Origin: Convolutriloba macropyga
Lineage: Eukaryota
Assembly (NCBI RefSeq): GCF_964194025.1
Contig: NC_134470.1
Location: forward strand, 6,448,001 to 6,512,000
Direction: 5' to 3'
Length of the DNA stretch: 64,000 nucleotides
In this document: piece by piece, positions 46,720 to 58,700 of the stretch
Numbering within the stretch: the first letter of the stretch is position 1
Layout of the letters: every line of letters starts with the position of its first letter
Made by a program: the position numbers and the translations under genes
Notes under the pieces: model-generated
What the model was told of the DNA's origin: nothing
The model's input: the letters and a program-made list of their open reading frames with translations, nothing else
Database searches by the model: none

Positions 46720-49700
46720 TTAGTCAGCATGGTTTGAGTCTAGACGTTGGTATGCTTGACCAGAAGAGATTTTCCTCTGCTTGACCACAAACAGTCCAAT
46801 GGCAGCCAAAAGAGCTGCAAATGCCACCAAAATGAATAAGGAAGCCAGGGAAGCAGCCAGGGGTGAGTACTGGCTATTAGGTCCAGCCAAAGCAGCTGAA
46901 ATATCAAAATTGGCCTAAGATTTGACGAGAACCCACCGTTTGTGTTCTGTTACTCGACAGAAAATTAGAGATGCTAATTGTTCTCACAACCAAAATGGAA
47001 CGAAATACCGACTTCGTATGCACTAAAAATAGAAGATAAATTTTAGTACAGAAAAATTCTCTTCACTCTCTTTTATTTTTCTTAAAATACCCTAACTTTA
47101 CCGCAATTTGATCTTAACAAAAGACTTAACTTCACCCTAACTTACCTAAAAAAAACATTAACATTTTACCTCTACATAATTTTCACCAATTTACTTTAAT
47201 TTCTGCCATTCTGTACTCTTGAATGTTTGGGTTAAGTACCCTAAACGTAAGGTACGTTAATAAAAATTTCGAAACACTGTTGCCTTAACGTTACTTTAAC
47301 TTTGCCATAACGTAACCCTCTGATGAATTTACCTTAATGCCATTAAGGTGAATTCACCCCAACTTCAATTAAAGCAAAATTTTTATGTTGCATCCCATTC
47401 ATTTTTTCATAAATCTTCTCAACAATCGCCTCCCCCATAGAGACCTAGAAGAGAATTTCCATCCCTTATCAGAGACCCACCATCTGCACAAAAGGCAACA
47501 TGTAGATACCTAGTATCATAATCAGCACCATATCTGACGACACGTCTTGGCTATCGATAAAAACTACGCTCTCAGGATGGTGAGAAATTTTCTTCCTTGA
47601 ATTGTAGTCAAGGATTACCTCCCCTTATACAACAGCGGGGGGGGGGGGGGCTTAACAGATCTATATGAACTATGTCTCATTATTTAAAAAAACAAATAAA
47701 ACCTTAAATAATTCAAACTTATCTTTTGCAAAAGTGGAGGCAGTCTTGGAAGCTTGATCTGCAAGTTCCCCAGTGTAGGTAAAGACTATTATGCCAGATT
47801 TTTTGGTATAGTTTGCCTATGACGAAAATTTGATTTTCATACAAATTTTATGTCATTATGTTATTGTCTTTTTTGTAAAAAAAAATAATCGGGAAAAAGA
47901 ATTATTCAAATGAAAACAAACTTGTTAGGTGAAAAAAATGTTTTCCATTCCGTGCGAGATAACTTCTGGAGCCTAGTTTGACGTTAATGAGAACCAACTT
48001 GGGGGGGGGGGGGTATGATTCAGAAAAGAAAATGTAAACAAAATAAAAAAGTCTCGTGTCGCAAGAGCCGATGAAAGTAATGTGTGTTACCCTGGTTGAG
48101 ATCCCAGGATGGAAGTATGTTCAGACCAAAGATGAACGCTAGAGGGGTGTCGTGCATTCAAAAAACTTAATCTGGAAGCATCCAAAAACGCAGGAAAGTC
48201 TGGACACGAACGCAAAAAAGTGTTGACATGAACACATGAAAGTGTGGACATGAACGCGCATATGTCTCGACATGAATTCACTATTTGTTTCAGCCTTGTC
48301 AAAAAAACTAATATCTATTAGATGAATTATAGCACTCTTATTCCAAAACACAAAAGTTTATAACATAGAAGCTAGAAAACACTAGCGTTCATATTAAATC
48401 GAGGTAAAAATTTAACCACCAAAAATTTATTAAACTTTGAAAGTTGACAGAATAAACTAAAGAAATTGACAGAAGGTTACTGTTTTCACCGCACTAAGTG
48501 CTAAAGAATGCGGGTACGCGCCCTTAAAAAATATAATTTTTTTAATAGTATTCATCGCAATTCATACATTTTTGTCAAGACAAAATATTGAATGGAGAAG
48601 GTTAATGTTTAACGAGCCCCAGACAGTTGATCACCTGAGTAATACCTTTCAGATTGTCGAAGTAGAGCAGATTATCTAACTTAATTTGACTAACTTTGCT
48701 CGGAAATGCCTCTTCGGACGACAACGATTGGAGATGAAGACACCATTCCAGTCCTCACTGTGATGCCCAGGCTGTCGCCAGTAGCCAGGTCACGCTTGTG
48801 ACGTTTGTTACAATCTGTGAAGTAAATTGAGCTGTTTTCATATATGATCTCAACTTTAACATCTATTTCATTCTAACAACTAGCGGCATGTTTACAACAC
48901 AAAAATTATCATTTAAAAATGAATTTAAAAAACCGAGCGTGTTAATGACGGTCGTAACTGCAATCATACCTGGGTCGATTATTTGGCTAACTATTGTGTT
49001 AACAGGAAATGAAAGATCCCAGCTATTTGTTTCGCAAACGTAATTTTATGCCGATTATTGATGATTAATTGTTTCACGTGTGTTTGGAATTTGAGTTGCG
49101 CCCCATTCCTTTCATCCCATCCCGGGTTGAGGTGCCATCCGGAAGTGACCTCTGATCATCCGGAGTCCAACACACACGTTGTGTTCCCAGACCATAGTTA
49201 CAGGGTCTGGGTTTTGGTTCCGGATGGGAGTGGTCTGATCATAGGTCACTTGCTGATGGGAATGGTATGATCAGAGGTCGCTTCCGGATGGGAATAGTCT
49301 GATCAGGGGTTACTTTCGGATGGGAATGGTATGATCAGAGGTCACTTCCGGATGGGAATGGTATGATCATAAGCCCCTTTCGAGCGCACAATAGTATGAT
49401 CAGAGGTCAGCTCGGTTTGCACATCATACACAATTCTTAGTAGTCATACTAGGTCATATATGATTCCTAGTATTCATACAAGGTCATATATGATTTGCAT
49501 GATTTCTTAGTAGTCATACAAGGATTATACATGATTTCCTAGAAATCATACAGGGATCATACAAAAAAAATCAAATCCTACAAACTGTACATCTTTCATT
49601 TTCTTTTGAAGTTGAAAAAATTTCCTGGAAATCATACAAGGTCATATATCACACATAAAACATTGATTGGTTTCTCAATTTTCCGTATAATGTAGTCAGA

Positions 49701-52700
49701 GGACATAATAAAATTTTATGTCGCATCTGTATTCCACGTTTGATTCTTTGTTTGGGCGAAAAGAATAACTTTCCAACTTAAATAATATCAGAAAACGAAT
49801 TTGAGGTTATCTGTAAAAAATTTTTCTAAATATTTTTTTATAAATGAGCATCTATAGGTATAAGCTGGCTTCAGAGAATATCAGAACTTCATTTATTTAA
49901 TTGGACTTACTCATTAATTTCGTGCCCAACTTTGCAAATGATATTGCACGTTTTGGTCTTTTAGCGGATCACAAAGAGATGCCGGGAATCACATAAGTGA
50001 GTCCTTGCCGATTGAATTTTTTAAAAGACAAAAATGGTTTAAAAATTTATGAAAAATAGCTATATGATTCTTGGTATTCATACTAGGATCATATATGATT
50101 TCTTTGTAGTCATACAAGGTTCATATATGATTTCCTAGTAGTCATGTATGATTTCTTAGTAGTCATGCAAGGGTCGTACTAGGAAATACGTTAAGATTTG
50201 TATTATACCATATATGATCCTTGTATGACTACTCAGAAGTGGTGACCTGGGAGTTCAGTCTGAGGATAGTCTGATCAGAGGTCTGTTCTGGATGGTAACC
50301 GTCTGATCATAGGCACCTTAGATCTAAAATAGGTTAAATACTGTCGGAAAAAATCTATAGTTGAACTAACGAACAATTTTTTGAGATTTTTCAATTGTTT
50401 TCGATGTGTTACCCTCTTCCGTCTCTCAACCGGGCTGGGGAACGGCTACGGCGGATTTACAAACAAACAACAGTAGGAGAACTGAGTCCGAGCAAACGGC
50501 AAAAATACGCGCTCTAAGATTCTCCCCCAAAAAACAAACAAAACAAAACAAATTAAAACATATAGCTAAAATTATGTCAAAAAGTTGTCTCAAGTTGATT
50601 TAAAAAAACCAACTTTTGAGATTTTCCTGTATTATCTGGTGGCGTTTTCCTCCTCCTTCTCTCAACCGGGCTGGGGACCGGCTACGGCGGAGTTACAAAG
50701 AAACAACTAAAGGAAATTTTGAGAAGAGCACTAGGTAAATTGCCAGGCTTAAACTCTATCTCCTAACAAAACAATGCATAAATCGTTACTTTAACAACAA
50801 ATTTTTAAATTTCGCTAATCGCGGAACTCGCAAATTTCCGTATGAAAAACTAACTTTTTTCCTAGCAAGCTATAGCAACAATTCTTTTTGTTTTAGACTC
50901 TAGGTACACAGGAGATACTCCAAACCGAGTTTGGTTTAGTTTGGTCTGGGTATAGTCTGATCACAGGTCATCTGACGCGCACAATCGTCTGGACAATGGT
51001 CTGGGATTCGTCTGGGCCATGGTTGCACAATCCACTGGCAATGGTCTGATTTGGGTATGACCATAGGTCACTTCCGGATGGGAATGGTATGATCAGAGAC
51101 AGTTGTGAGCGCACAATGAGCGCACATGGTGTTTTGAGCGCACATTAGTGTGATCAGATGATACTTTCGTCTGGGATGGTCTGATCAGAGCTTAATTTCG
51201 TCTGGCGCGGTCTGATCAGAGCTCACTTCCGGATTGCCCTTCAACCTGGGATACAACACGCTAAGGCGTTTCATTTTAGATATCTCGTCTTACGCTATTA
51301 GCGCAATTAACTTTTAGATTAATGCTTGGTGCGAAGTAATTGATATGAATTATATTGAGTATTTTGCAAACTCGAGGCGAGATTGCCTAACTCAACTGAA
51401 TTGTGATACCCGCCTGTTATTTGACTCAGGCATGTAGTTTAAATCAGACTAGCAGGTCTGTAAAAGCTACCTGAAGGCATCTTATCTTGAACTTCTAGCA
51501 ATTAATATTCTCATTAAAAAATTATTAGTGATTGCTGGTGTACATAAGATCATTTAAATGACATTTTGCAAATTACTTTGGACACCCCAAAACAATGAAG
51601 ACAACCAACTATGTCAAAGAAAATTTTTATGCGAGTTAAAAGTACTAGACGTTCTCACAGAGCAAGAAAAAATCAAAACAGATAGAACGAGTTATAAAGA
51701 GAATGAGAAAGAGAGAGACATCCATAGCAGCGGAAATATATAGTGAACCGGAGAGCTAATAGATATAAGAATACGAAAAAAAAATCCAAAAGACCGAGAA
51801 CAAAAGAAGGTTGAAGGCAGAGAAGGAAAACAGAAAAAAATTATCTGGGAGAAAGCCAAGGGAAGCGAAAAGCGAAAAAAGGGAATTAAGGAGGAGCAAG
51901 AAAAATTGAAATTGATTGACAGGAAAACATAAAGAATAAAATGCGACAGAAACTATAAAAACACCAGGAAACCACCGTAAGAAACTTAAAACTGAATAAA
52001 AAACAGACAAGTAAAAAGAAGAAGTTAGTTAACAACCGAGAAAAAAAGAGAGAGCGATAGAGAGAGAGAGAGAAGTGAAAAAGGAAAGTGAGATAGTGGA
52101 AGAACGCAAGAAAAAACGAAAGCTGTATAAAGAAGGAAAATTGGACCGCTAATAGAAAGAAGCCAAAATCATGAGAGGGAAAGTACAAGAACAGCGAAAA
52201 AGTGAGCAAGCGCAAAAAGCAAAAGCAAAAAATTGAGTGTAACAAGAAAATATCAGAGCTAGAGAGAACACTTGAAGAGAAGATATAAAATAAAGCACAA
52301 CAGAAAAAAAAGATAGAAAAAGAAACCGAAGAGAGGGAGAGATACAACAGTTCCAAAGTGAAGAGAAATTAGATCATGGGTGAGATAATGCATTCCGGTT
52401 CTCATGAAAAAAGATGAATGTGCTAATGAGAACACGGTTGCAGTGCCCAAAATGAGGATTGTGGTGATGAAAAATAATCGTTGTCAAGATTTTGCGAAAT
52501 TTTTTACGATTTTAACAAACACAGATCTGAGTTAAAGAACTGGCTAATGCCACCAAAATAAATTTCTCAAAAAAATTAAAGAAGGAACATTATATACCGA
52601 TCATGTTTCGTATGCAATAAATTATTAGTGACAGCCCTTAATATGAAAAATTCTTCTACTGAGCGCTCAAAAAGTTGTATTTATTTTAAGACCTTTCTTG

Positions 52701-55700: not shown

Positions 55701-58700
55701 AGGTGTTCAACTCATGAGTTCCGTCGACGTTGGGAAATAGACCTCTGGGAATTTGAATTGGAGGCATATTCTGGAAGTCTTCCATCCATTTCTGAATTTC
55801 GTGGTAATTTTCCTTTGAGATTAGTTGGTCCCAATTGTGTCCTTCTTGATTTGCAAGATGCATCTCAATTGAACTGTAAAAGGCAAGATTTTCCAATTGG
55901 GTTCAAACAAAGGAGCAGCCATTGAGAGAAGCTTTCTCTGTGTGATATTAACGTTTTCATTGCTCAGTTTGGGTTTCGCAAAAAGAAGTTGGTCGGATTC
56001 AGGGTTCCATGTTTGACCAAGTATCCTCTGCAACTTCAGAACTCCAATTCTTCCTTCCTCTGGAATATTTTCCAGCACAGCAGGGATATTGCTGAGAAAC
56101 TTGGTGAGGTTGAATCCCCCTGTTTTGAGAACATGTTTCAGCTCAGTCGCTGTATTTGCAGCCTCCTCCTCTGTTGAAAATGTTTGTATGAAGTCATCCA
56201 TGTAGACTTGTTTTATGATTGAGTCGAATATTTCTGGATGCTGTTGTCTGTTATCCTTGGCGCACTTTTGCAGAACAAAAATTGCGCTGGCGGGAGAACA
56301 AGTTGCTCCAAAAATGAGTTGTTGGTATTTGGATGTCCTCCACTCCTCATCTCCGCTCCACAAAAAAACGGAGAGCATCTTGGTCTTCTTCTCTGATTCC
56401 AACTTGCATGAACATAGCCTCTATGTCTGCTGTTATTGCAACCTTGTACTGAAGAAACCGTAAAAGAAGTCCATGTAGATTGCACAAAAGATCCGGTCCC
56501 GTTAGCAGCGCATCGTTCAAAGAAACCCCTTTGTATTTTGAGGCTGCATTTGTCACTCGTCTTATCTTGTCTGATTTTTGCTTGTTGATTAGGGGATGAT
56601 GAGGCAGATACCAAATTTTTTGCATCTTGGTTCGTAACAGCTGCTATGTATCCCTTATCCATATCATCAAAGATAGTGGTCATATATCTCTGTTTCAGTT
56701 TGTTGTCTCTCTCTCTAATTGCTTCTGCAGGGCGTGCCACTGAACCCTTGCCATGAAGTAATTGCTGGGCAGTGTGACGTTTTCTCGCCATGGGAGTCAA
56801 ATCTCAAATCTTTCCCCGTTGTGATGTGTGGTCAAAATCTTTAGTGCCTTCTGGTCCTCTTCCTTGAGTCCCTTTGTAGAACCCTGACTGAAATTGACAC
56901 CTTCAAAGGTCCAAAACAGGTGTAGAAGGATTTCGTTCGGGTCGTCACTACCTCGCTTGAGATGGTTGAAAAGAGTGATGTTGTGGTTGCTGCTTCATTT
57001 TATTGTTTGGTTGAAAGTACTCTTGTGGCACAGGGCCTGTCAAAGTCCATCCTAACAGTGTGTTGACTCCGTAGGGTGTTCCTGTTTTGCCGGTAGTGAA
57101 ATGTCTTGGCACAGTAGCCAGAAAAGCCTCAGCCCCTATGAATATTCCAATTTTGTTGTCACAGATTTGTGGAAAATTGATATCTGCCAGATGATCATGC
57201 TCCCTACAAAGTCTATTCAACATTTCTGCGGGGACAGTTGGCAATTGGAGCTGCTCGATAGAGGTTGTGTACACAGAAAGACTTGTCACTGGATTTGAGC
57301 TGCGAAGTGAACCAATTCCGATCATGACATCAGCTGTTGTCACTGTGTGCTCACCAAGTAGCGAAGCTAGAGGAAGTTCTATATTTTTTGGGGACTCTAA
57401 TTCGAAGAGCATCAGCAATGTTTTGTGTGATCTGCGTATAATCATTTCCACGGTCCAAAAGTTCATAAGTCTCTATGTTGAAGTCTTTGTTGAAGTGCGT
57501 GACTGGTATCGCCTGTAGTTGAATAAAAACTCTGACCCATGTGGGTTGCCGATTTTTGCTGCAAGTGTGGTTTTGCACCCGTGGAAGTTTGGCTGGCCCA
57601 TCATTCAGCTCGTTGCTGGTCACTGATTGAAAGTCATTTGAGGATTGCTGTGCTGCTGATTGGCAGTTTGATGCGAGCGGTTGTTTCCATAGCTTGGATT
57701 ACGAAGGTTGAAATTGTTTTGATTATATCCCCTTCTGTTGTTGGTATTTGCCGTGTTACTGATTGTTGACGAAAGCTGAGACGTTGTATGATTGAAGTTT
57801 CTACCGTAATTTGACTGCACCGGTTTATTCCTGGATCGAAATCCTCCTTTAATCGTTGCTTCGAAACTACTTCTCTGCGAAGTCCTGAAGTCGTCTCGAT
57901 GGAGAGTTGAATGATGAAACCTAATGCATCTGTCTACAAGACATCGAATTTTTGATTTACAGAATCCACTCTCATGTATCTTCAAACAATTGACACACAA
58001 GTTGTGATGCCTCACCAATAGCAGGCAGTCAGCTACAGATTTGCTCGTGTATTCTTTGCAGCGACCAAGGTTGTGATCCCCAGAGCATAGTAGACAGTTT
58101 GAGCTGGCTTGAAAAATTATGGTGGAGTGTTTCTGGCCTTGGGAAAGCCAATCAACCCGGACTGTTTTTTGTGGTCTGTGTGGAGAGGCATCCTCTCAAG
58201 CCTATGCATATGTGTTTATCCAATCTGCAAAATCAGCTAAATTGGGTTGCTCTATTCTCATGCTCCTTACATGTTGATTCCAGCAAATAGTCATTGGTGT
58301 TGTCAACTTTTTCTCGGCAACTTTAGCTACCGCTGAAGCTTTTAGGTGCAAATCAAAATGGTGAATTCGAAAGGTCTGTACCAAACGACTGAGGAAGGAC
58401 GCAAAACTTCCAAAGCTGCTGGGATCATCCATTCTGGTCTTAGGTCATTATTCATGTTTTGTGAGGTATGCACTCACATCAAGCTGCGGCTTTCCAAAAA
58501 TTTCTGATAAGTTCCTGAAGTGCCTCCTCATAGAAGTCTCCGTTGTAAGAGTAACCACAGATGAAGTCTTTTGCTTTGTGAGTTACAGAGTTTTGCAAGT
58601 ATGTCATTTTCTGAACAGTTGAAAGAGCTGGATTGTCGTGAATGGTTGACTTGAAAAAACTGTACCATTGATGCCACATCAAAGGGTCGCCTGAGAAATG

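Follow-up and report, generated by a model that had tools for sequence, protein, structure and literature searches.

A tandem pair of twister-like ribozyme cores inside an inverted-repeat DNA transposon of Convolutriloba macropyga

How does a direct tandem pair of twister-like, putatively self-cleaving ribozyme cores come to stand in the genome of Convolutriloba macropyga, and is it copied as RNA or as DNA? The pair lies on the minus strand of the window, i.e., the whole stretch of 64,000 nt analyzed here (contig NC_134470.1, positions 6,448,001 to 6,512,000), and the first-pass annotation, made from the letters alone, had taken it for a candidate retrozyme-like replicon. Based on the anatomy of the surrounding DNA and on related loci elsewhere in the genome, we consider it quite probable that the pair is an inherited internal module of a non-autonomous cut-and-paste transposon at 49121-51250. 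The lineage would be CMC/EnSpm-like and spread as DNA, with the ribozyme kept by selection in the master copies. We would class the find as a known type of ribozyme that is met here in a new setting and in a variant sequence. To our knowledge the role of twisters in animals is largely unknown, the sole worked-out case being the 5' processing of an RTE-type retrotransposon. In the present case, at least eight subfamilies of DNA transposons have retained this type of ribozyme close to their 3' end, and its pattern of constraint matches the functional map of twisters. Young, near-identical and presumably autonomous copies, short derivatives and natural variants together provide a testable system for self-cleavage in a DNA transposon, and the case illustrates that tandem ribozyme repeats in animal genomes are not necessarily retrozymes.

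The twister pair and its transposon

The element that encloses the pair has inverted ends of 38 nt (CCCGGGTTGAGG... and ...TTCAACCTGGG), which extend to 40 nt at 88% complementarity when the AT flanks are counted. It meets its surroundings in a 2-bp target-site duplication and carries arrays of short subterminal repeats; inverted ends with a short duplication, and subterminal repeat arrays, are both features of CMC/EnSpm transposons. At loci L002, L008 and L010 there are further copies that agree with it in their ends and in the order of their internal parts. The 2-bp duplication is present in three of the four copies, as AT in the window, TT in L008 and AA in L002, and the flanks of L010 do not match. 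The terminal motif CCCNGGTTGA... / ...TCAACCNGGG is common to the window element and to a family of giant elements with a 226-nt unit period, described below. The idea of a retrozyme-like replicon is therefore contradicted by the enclosure of the pair, as an internal module, between inverted repeats and a target duplication. The features of the element are as follows.

49121-51250, minus strand (sense set by the twisters): non-autonomous cut-and-paste DNA transposon of 2130 bp that encloses the twister pair, both ends joined by an inverted repeat
49119-49120 and partner 51251-51252, no strand: target-site duplication AT, flanking the element as AT/CCCGGG...CCTGGG/AT
49121-49158, no strand: terminal inverted repeat, 3' end in twister sense, partner 51213-51250
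51213-51250, no strand: terminal inverted repeat, 5' end in twister sense, partner 49121-49158
50644-50699, minus strand: core A; cmscan match to twister-P1 (RF03160), 36.1 bits, E-value 4e-6; predicted cut between 50695 and 50694
50408-50463, minus strand: core B; cmscan match to twister-P1 (RF03160), 24.9 bits, E-value 0.007; predicted cut between 50459 and 50458
50712-50763, minus strand: upstream structured domain of unit A, GGAGA...UUUCC around a hairpin with a U-rich loop; found in all subfamilies, with differing stem sequences
50575-50627, minus strand: hairpin 3' of core A (GGAAAA...UUUUUG), folding z-score -3.2
51040-51236, with other blocks at 50252-50315 and 49216-49420, no strand: 32-bp subterminal repeats, repeat families inside both ends
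50805-50944, minus strand: one unit of a satellite-like repeat of ~140-170 bp directly 5' of the twister units; it stands in tandem before the twisters in L004, L009, L023, L028 and L032
49431-50241, no strand: insertion nested in the transposon, with inverted ends and 30-32-bp repeats of its own; no counterpart at the matching place in L002, L008 and L010

Both cores follow the layout U^AA-CUCC-GC-(4-5 nt)-CCGG-UCCCCAGC-CCGG-(9 nt)-GGAG-GA-GGG and entirely miss the P3 stem-loop. Their tandem arrangement, as first described, is borne out by a repeat search, which returned a 71-nt direct repeat (50408-50478 and 50644-50714, 86% identity, spacing 236 nt), and by the alignment of the two 236-nt units, A and B, from end to end with the core as their best-matching part. 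The two U^A steps also lie exactly where they had been placed, separated by 236 nt. A sensitive cmscan search covering 50200-50900 confirmed the proposed twister identity on the reverse strand in so far as both cores matched the twister-P1 model of Rfam, with the P3 columns deleted in both matches; each remains under the gathering score of this model (67.2 bits), and no family was reached when the window was scanned at the Rfam gathering thresholds. The score shortfall is mostly because of the missing P3 columns.

The core sequence given earlier holds in its general layout and fails in detail, as copy A reads GAGGA and not GAGGG, and copy B has further changes in helices P2 and P4. In copy A, P2, P4 and pseudoknot T2 are intact, pseudoknot T1 has one C.A mismatch at its outer pair (GGG to GGA), helix P1 is weakened by a G to C change at position -6, and the hairpin 3' of the core is intact. 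In copy B, the more damaged of the two, P2 contains an A.A mismatch, the loop-proximal pair of P4 is a U.C mismatch, and the downstream hairpin has decayed; both of its pseudoknots are intact. The suspicion that these copies are decayed was thus well founded. The catalytic residues are retained in both, and copy A may keep a reduced activity, judging from published tolerance data. The window copy of the transposon is old, partly decayed and of little consequence in itself.

Several observations concern the other parts of the stretch. The nested insertion (~810 bp), which interrupts the 3' subterminal repeat block of the transposon, contains repeats of the TCATACAAGG type, and similar sequence occurs in L019. 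In DNA sequencing runs of two organisms, A and B, the satellite unit at 50805-50944 is the most abundant part of the stretch, with a summed word depth in the millions versus thousands for its neighbours; it is apparently a major satellite that, in addition, forms an internal array of these transposons. Organism B, the second of the two, holds the twister core (50659-50712) as well as the satellite (50821-50901), and the module is probably shared by related species. Outside the transposon, the absence of reverse-transcriptase-coding sequence beside the pair was confirmed: the nearest such sequence is an RVT_1 open reading frame (ORF) piece at 55821-56402 on the minus strand, which scores 30.3 bits and so barely exceeds the cut-off. 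This retroelement fragment is 4.6 kb away from the element and has no visible link to the twisters.

The module across the genome and its giant carriers

The genome, 1.18 Gb in the search, yielded 1471 first-look candidates for a 292-nt query. When the 30-nt core was searched at up to three mismatches, 1404 matches were obtained in the genome and none in the reversed control, so these matches are not due to chance. Both cores of the window have C where the canonical core has the first A of AAGC, which had been noted as a departure and possible decay. The exact 16-mer with C (CCGGTCCCCAGCCCGG) occurs 927 times and the canonical form with A (CCGGTCCCAAGCCCGG) 157 times; the far commoner C form is therefore a trait of the family, and the decay interpretation falls. 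The variant position is that of the trans A.A contact beside the CCC/GGG pseudoknot. In a high-throughput assay of ~2600 natural twisters, A-to-C changes at this site caused no significant loss (PMC11662667), changes of L2 length and defects of P1 were also tolerated (PMC11662667; PMC5113685), and the sensitive positions were A+1, A+2, the general-base G and the pseudoknots (PMC11662667). P3 is an auxiliary stem-loop that only some twisters carry (PMC11662667; PMC5113685), and the linkers GUAG and ACUG found here resemble the two halves of a deleted P3.

Related forms were seen at a few other places. At L051:1350-1430, a truncated core with the canonical CCCAAGCCCGG precedes the first complete C-variant core of a 251-nt-period array by 124 nt. 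Matches of 92 nt to twister-P1, presumably with P3, reach up to 63 bits elsewhere in the genome (e.g., C6:30285738-30285829 and C7:52985514-52985605), and contig C5 carries a string of 64-nt twister-P1 matches, 0.5-1.7 kb apart, at 56535198-56540285.

The expectation that the unit is multicopy and often tandem was confirmed by the 1404 core matches and by 73 exact tandem pairs with periods of 221-251 nt, which are spread over many chromosomes and belong to arrays of up to five units. A single core was present in 17 of the 20 loci of a sample picked by the exact core alone. The two units of the window belong to distinct types that diverged long ago. When aligned in register, the window pair and other loci agree at 80-87% over ~420 bp, versus a match of only ~105-150 bp out of register; the pair was therefore copied together as DNA and is not the rolling-circle product of one monomer.

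In at least eight transposon subfamilies, the module consists of one to five units at fixed phase, 340-740 nt before a 3' terminus of the form ...CNGGG, with an internal satellite array on one side and the 3' subterminal repeats on the other. It extends from a GGAGA...UCUCC domain ~75 nt before the cut to UUUUCCGACA ~125 nt after the cut, and beyond UUUUCCGACA it passes into subterminal repeats specific to each subfamily. These repeats have no detectable nucleotide similarity between subfamilies, and the place of the module is unchanged. We label the families with 226- and 251-nt unit periods F226 and F251. The 3' end of F226 (...GGTCAACCTGGG) lies 341 nt past the last core in 10 loci, that of F251 (...GATCAC(T/C)AGGG) ~390 nt past it, and the subfamilies Fa, Fb, Fd, Fe and the L032/L040 group have subterminal repeats of their own and ends of the form ...C(G/A)NC(C/T)NGGG at about +450 to +740. 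Termini of the F226/F251 type were located by a scan with known end motifs and those of the other subfamilies by the point at which pairwise homology stops. The 3' ends are sharp, i.e., homology between copies on different chromosomes stops there and the flanking DNA beyond is unrelated. For Fb, a nested miniature inverted-repeat transposable element (MITE) was considered as the source of the downstream part and rejected, as this part is the transposon's own 3' terminal region.

F226 and F251 are young elements of more than 12 kb. Upstream of the twisters, copies of each family from different chromosomes share more than 10 kb of sequence at 95-99.5% identity. On the twister strand they encode ORFs with a SET domain above the Pfam cut-off and with Transposase_21/DUF1258 similarity just below the cut-off; homologues at E-values of 1e-128 pass the cut-offs for Transposase_21 or DUF1258. 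The upstream 10 kb of F226 and F251 show no detectable nucleotide similarity to each other, and both of these young, presumably autonomous families keep at least two twister units. Both are tied to the window element by the module, and F226 also by the terminal motif CAACCTGGG. The occurrence of the module in the same phase and place before the 3' terminus in at least eight subfamilies, two of them with a probable Transposase_21-type transposase, speaks against the earlier suggestion of spread by RNA. Giant copies were observed in L072 and L074 (10 kb each), L067 and L055, with a common layout of SET ORF, putative transposase ORF, kilobases of internal satellite, twisters and subterminal repeats. 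Additional ORFs of 256, 141, 167 and 297 aa in L072 have no Pfam match.

Constraint, pairing and folding of the units

To describe constraint, identity was calculated among eight subfamily representatives, and base pairs were counted by script on named alignment columns of 31 unit sequences. Mean pairwise identity is 100% over the P2 3' strand, the general-base G, the following A and T1, a part of the core that was not used in choosing loci; it is 74% in the L2 linker, 72-76% in the P1 strands and 51-63% in the flanks. All 31 sequences agree at U-1, A+1, A+2, the general-base G and the second L4 adenine, and 30 of them have C for the first L4 adenine. Pairing is present in 28-31 sequences for P2 and P4 and in 24-31 for P1, which includes two compensatory pairs (G-C to U-A and U-A to C-G). 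T2 is paired in all 31 and T1 in 30-31; the pseudoknot pairs are invariant and hence give no covariation signal. The cmscan alignments place all three helices in the order of type P1 (P1-P2-P4), which is also the minimum-energy structure of the young copies. Variation is confined to places where twisters tolerate it, a pattern that favors selection for the function of the ribozyme in the master copies.

The first-pass annotation had derived past selection from a core more conserved than its spacer. This is true between subfamilies and does not apply within the window subfamily, in which core and spacer are equally conserved (0.89-0.92); the equal decay of the two indicates that inserted copies evolve neutrally and are not under constraint.

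Structure extends beyond the core. A hairpin of ~50 nt 3' of the core (GGAAAA...UUUUCC) has folding z-scores of -2 to -5 in eight of ten representatives, including window unit A; its inner stems differ, and its outer and middle stems are paired in most sequences. The hairpin with a U-rich loop 5' of the core has stems CUAG/CUAG, GCGG/CCGU or CUGG/CCAG. Whole monomers of the young families are somewhat more stably folded than shuffled sequences, with z-scores of -3.1 (F251) and -1.4 (F226), which is not so for the window monomer (-0.6). As the hairpin arms are misaligned in a MAFFT alignment of the 31 units, RNAalifold returned from it only P4, P2 in an alternative register (GGAG) and a long-range helix that is spurious. 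Two observations concern the pairing of P2: its 3' strand can pair in two registers within the run GGAGGAGGG (alignment columns 178-186, all members), and a conserved UCUCC ~15 nt upstream of the cut could compete with CUCC, the P2 5' strand, for the same partner. Such alternative pairings might constitute a folding switch.

The pattern of constraint bears directly on whether the module is passive cargo, i.e., a twister satellite or former retrozyme that was captured once and has no role, the similarity of cores reflecting recent ancestry or exchange. The module does adjoin other internal satellites that grow and shrink, and it varies itself from one to five units; the neutral decay of inserted copies and the choice of loci via the core also fit such an origin. 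We nevertheless regard it as unlikely. Conservation between subfamilies is not uniform and tracks the constraint map of twisters (100% at catalytic and pseudoknot positions, ~74% in L2 and P1, 51-63% in the flanks), with compensatory changes in P1 and in the flanking hairpins, whereas exchange of whole units would have homogenized the spacers as well. Moreover, the place of the module is the same despite dissimilar subterminal repeats and, for F226 and F251, a dissimilar upstream 10 kb.

Possible role, alternatives and known systems

In the scheme that we favor, i.e., an inherited module of a DNA transposon, the autonomous members of the lineage would be giant elements with SET-domain and Transposase_21/DUF1258 proteins, and copies would multiply as DNA through transposition, not via RNA. 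All members examined carry their one to five twister units on the sense strand. Anatomy, distribution in the family and pattern of constraint are observed; from these we infer that cleavage takes place in vivo, where the ribozyme would most likely cut sense transcripts of the element, or host read-through transcripts, just before the 3' subterminal and terminal repeats. In elements that have more than one unit, cleavage would in addition free a structured RNA of 226-251 nt, its ends being a 5'-OH and a 2',3'-cyclic phosphate. Cleavage may serve to uncouple the repeat-rich ends on RNA, to trim read-through transcripts or to yield the small RNA. A broader proposition, which we offer tentatively, is that the twister module is a selected functional part throughout one clade of eukaryotic DNA transposons, made up of giant SET-transposase CMC elements and the short elements derived from them, and cuts sense transcripts just inside the 3' subterminal repeats.

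Several points weigh against this account. All copies fall under the 67.2-bit gathering score, the best family members reaching 46.4 bits, and the published twister assays do not include the P3-less, long-L2, C-variant form. The giant families are known here from their 3' parts and upstream coding region and not from inverted repeats: among 85 occurrences of the 36-nt F226 3' end, none had an inverted partner nearby, the 5' ends of the giant families not being covered. Because subfamilies were recognized by their core, any lineage that has lost the ribozyme would have escaped the search. Finally, the equal conservation of core and spacer in the window subfamily, given above, belongs on this side as well.

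It is also conceivable that the released unit is itself the purpose, tandem twisters excising a structured and possibly circular RNA that acts in trans as a regulator or as a decoy for transposon proteins or host silencing. Most sampled loci have a single core and are unable to excise a unit, which makes this improbable, and the conserved, covarying hairpins that flank the core, by which the whole unit looks like a structured RNA, may merely insulate the folding of the ribozyme from neighbouring repeats. The presence of at least two units in both young giant families is the other point in its favor.

Replication as a twister retrozyme would require that double cleavage free a 236-nt RNA, which would circularize, be reverse transcribed by the machinery of a long interspersed nuclear element (LINE) or Penelope-like element (PLE), and re-insert in tandem. 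The chemistry that had been proposed is sound in that two active cores on one transcript would yield a 236-nt monomer with 5'-OH and 2',3'-cyclic phosphate ends; the replicon built on it is what does not follow. The units are non-coding, low in G+C, 226-251 bp in size (here a 236-bp dimer, with a twister and not a hammerhead) and arranged as dimers to pentamers, as in metazoan hammerhead retrozymes with their tandem units of 150-450 bp each bearing a ribozyme (PMC7229834), the 73 exact tandem pairs are dispersed on many chromosomes, and the F251 monomer folds better than its shuffles. Retrozyme arrays are free-standing, whereas every dispersed array examined here is embedded at fixed position and phase in a larger element with defined termini, and none of the arrays examined has variable phase in unique DNA. 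Together with the inverted repeats and 2-bp duplication around the window pair, the joint copying of diverged unit types in place of identical rolling-circle copies, and the single core in 17 of 20 core-selected loci, this leaves a retrozyme very improbable. A duplicated 5' untranslated region of an RTE LINE was rejected, as the element has no reverse transcriptase and its homology continues past the cut site in either direction.

Among known ribozymes, the closest sequences are the type-P1 twisters of Schistosoma mansoni (PMC8501958), which have the same order of elements and a near-identical core, UAA-CUCC-GC-...-CCG-GUCCC(A/C)AGC-CCGG-...-GGAG-GAGGG. The units share P1, P2, P4, the two pseudoknots, A+1, A+2 and the general-base G with type-P1 twisters in general (RF03160). 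They differ from these in that P3 is replaced by a 4-nt remnant (GUAG or ACUG), the 3' L2 strand has 8-9 nt versus ~5, C stands for the A of the trans A.A contact, and P1 is short with 1-2 unpaired bases beside the cut; they score 25-46 bits versus 67.2, and their activity is predicted only.

Twister variants of Perere-3/RTE elements set the 5' end of the retroelement RNA, and the target duplication abuts the cut site (PMC8501958; PMC7761336). The module described here is likewise carried by a mobile element, with which it would be transcribed, and is of the animal sequence type. In contrast to Perere-3/RTE, its position is 3' of the genes and close to the 3' end of a DNA transposon, the sequence is conserved to either side of the cut, and the element lacks a reverse transcriptase. 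Like metazoan non-LTR retrozymes with type I hammerheads (PMC7229834), it is built of short tandem units (150-450 bp) that are AT-rich, do not code for protein and each bear a ribozyme, and its monomers would in principle be ligatable by RtcB. The differences are the twister class, the embedding of the arrays at fixed phase and position in inverted-repeat elements, and the predominance of single units.

In the literature searched, no report connects inverted-repeat DNA transposons of eukaryotes with a twister or any other self-cleaving ribozyme. As transposons, the elements resemble the CMC superfamily (CACTA/EnSpm, Mirage, Chapaev) in their inverted termini, arrays of short subterminal repeats, internal satellites and 2-bp duplication, in the putative Transposase_21/DUF1258-type protein of the presumed autonomous relatives and in their short, MITE-like non-autonomous copies. 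They depart from it in termini that read CCCNGG... and not CACTA, and in having a ribozyme module as a conserved part.

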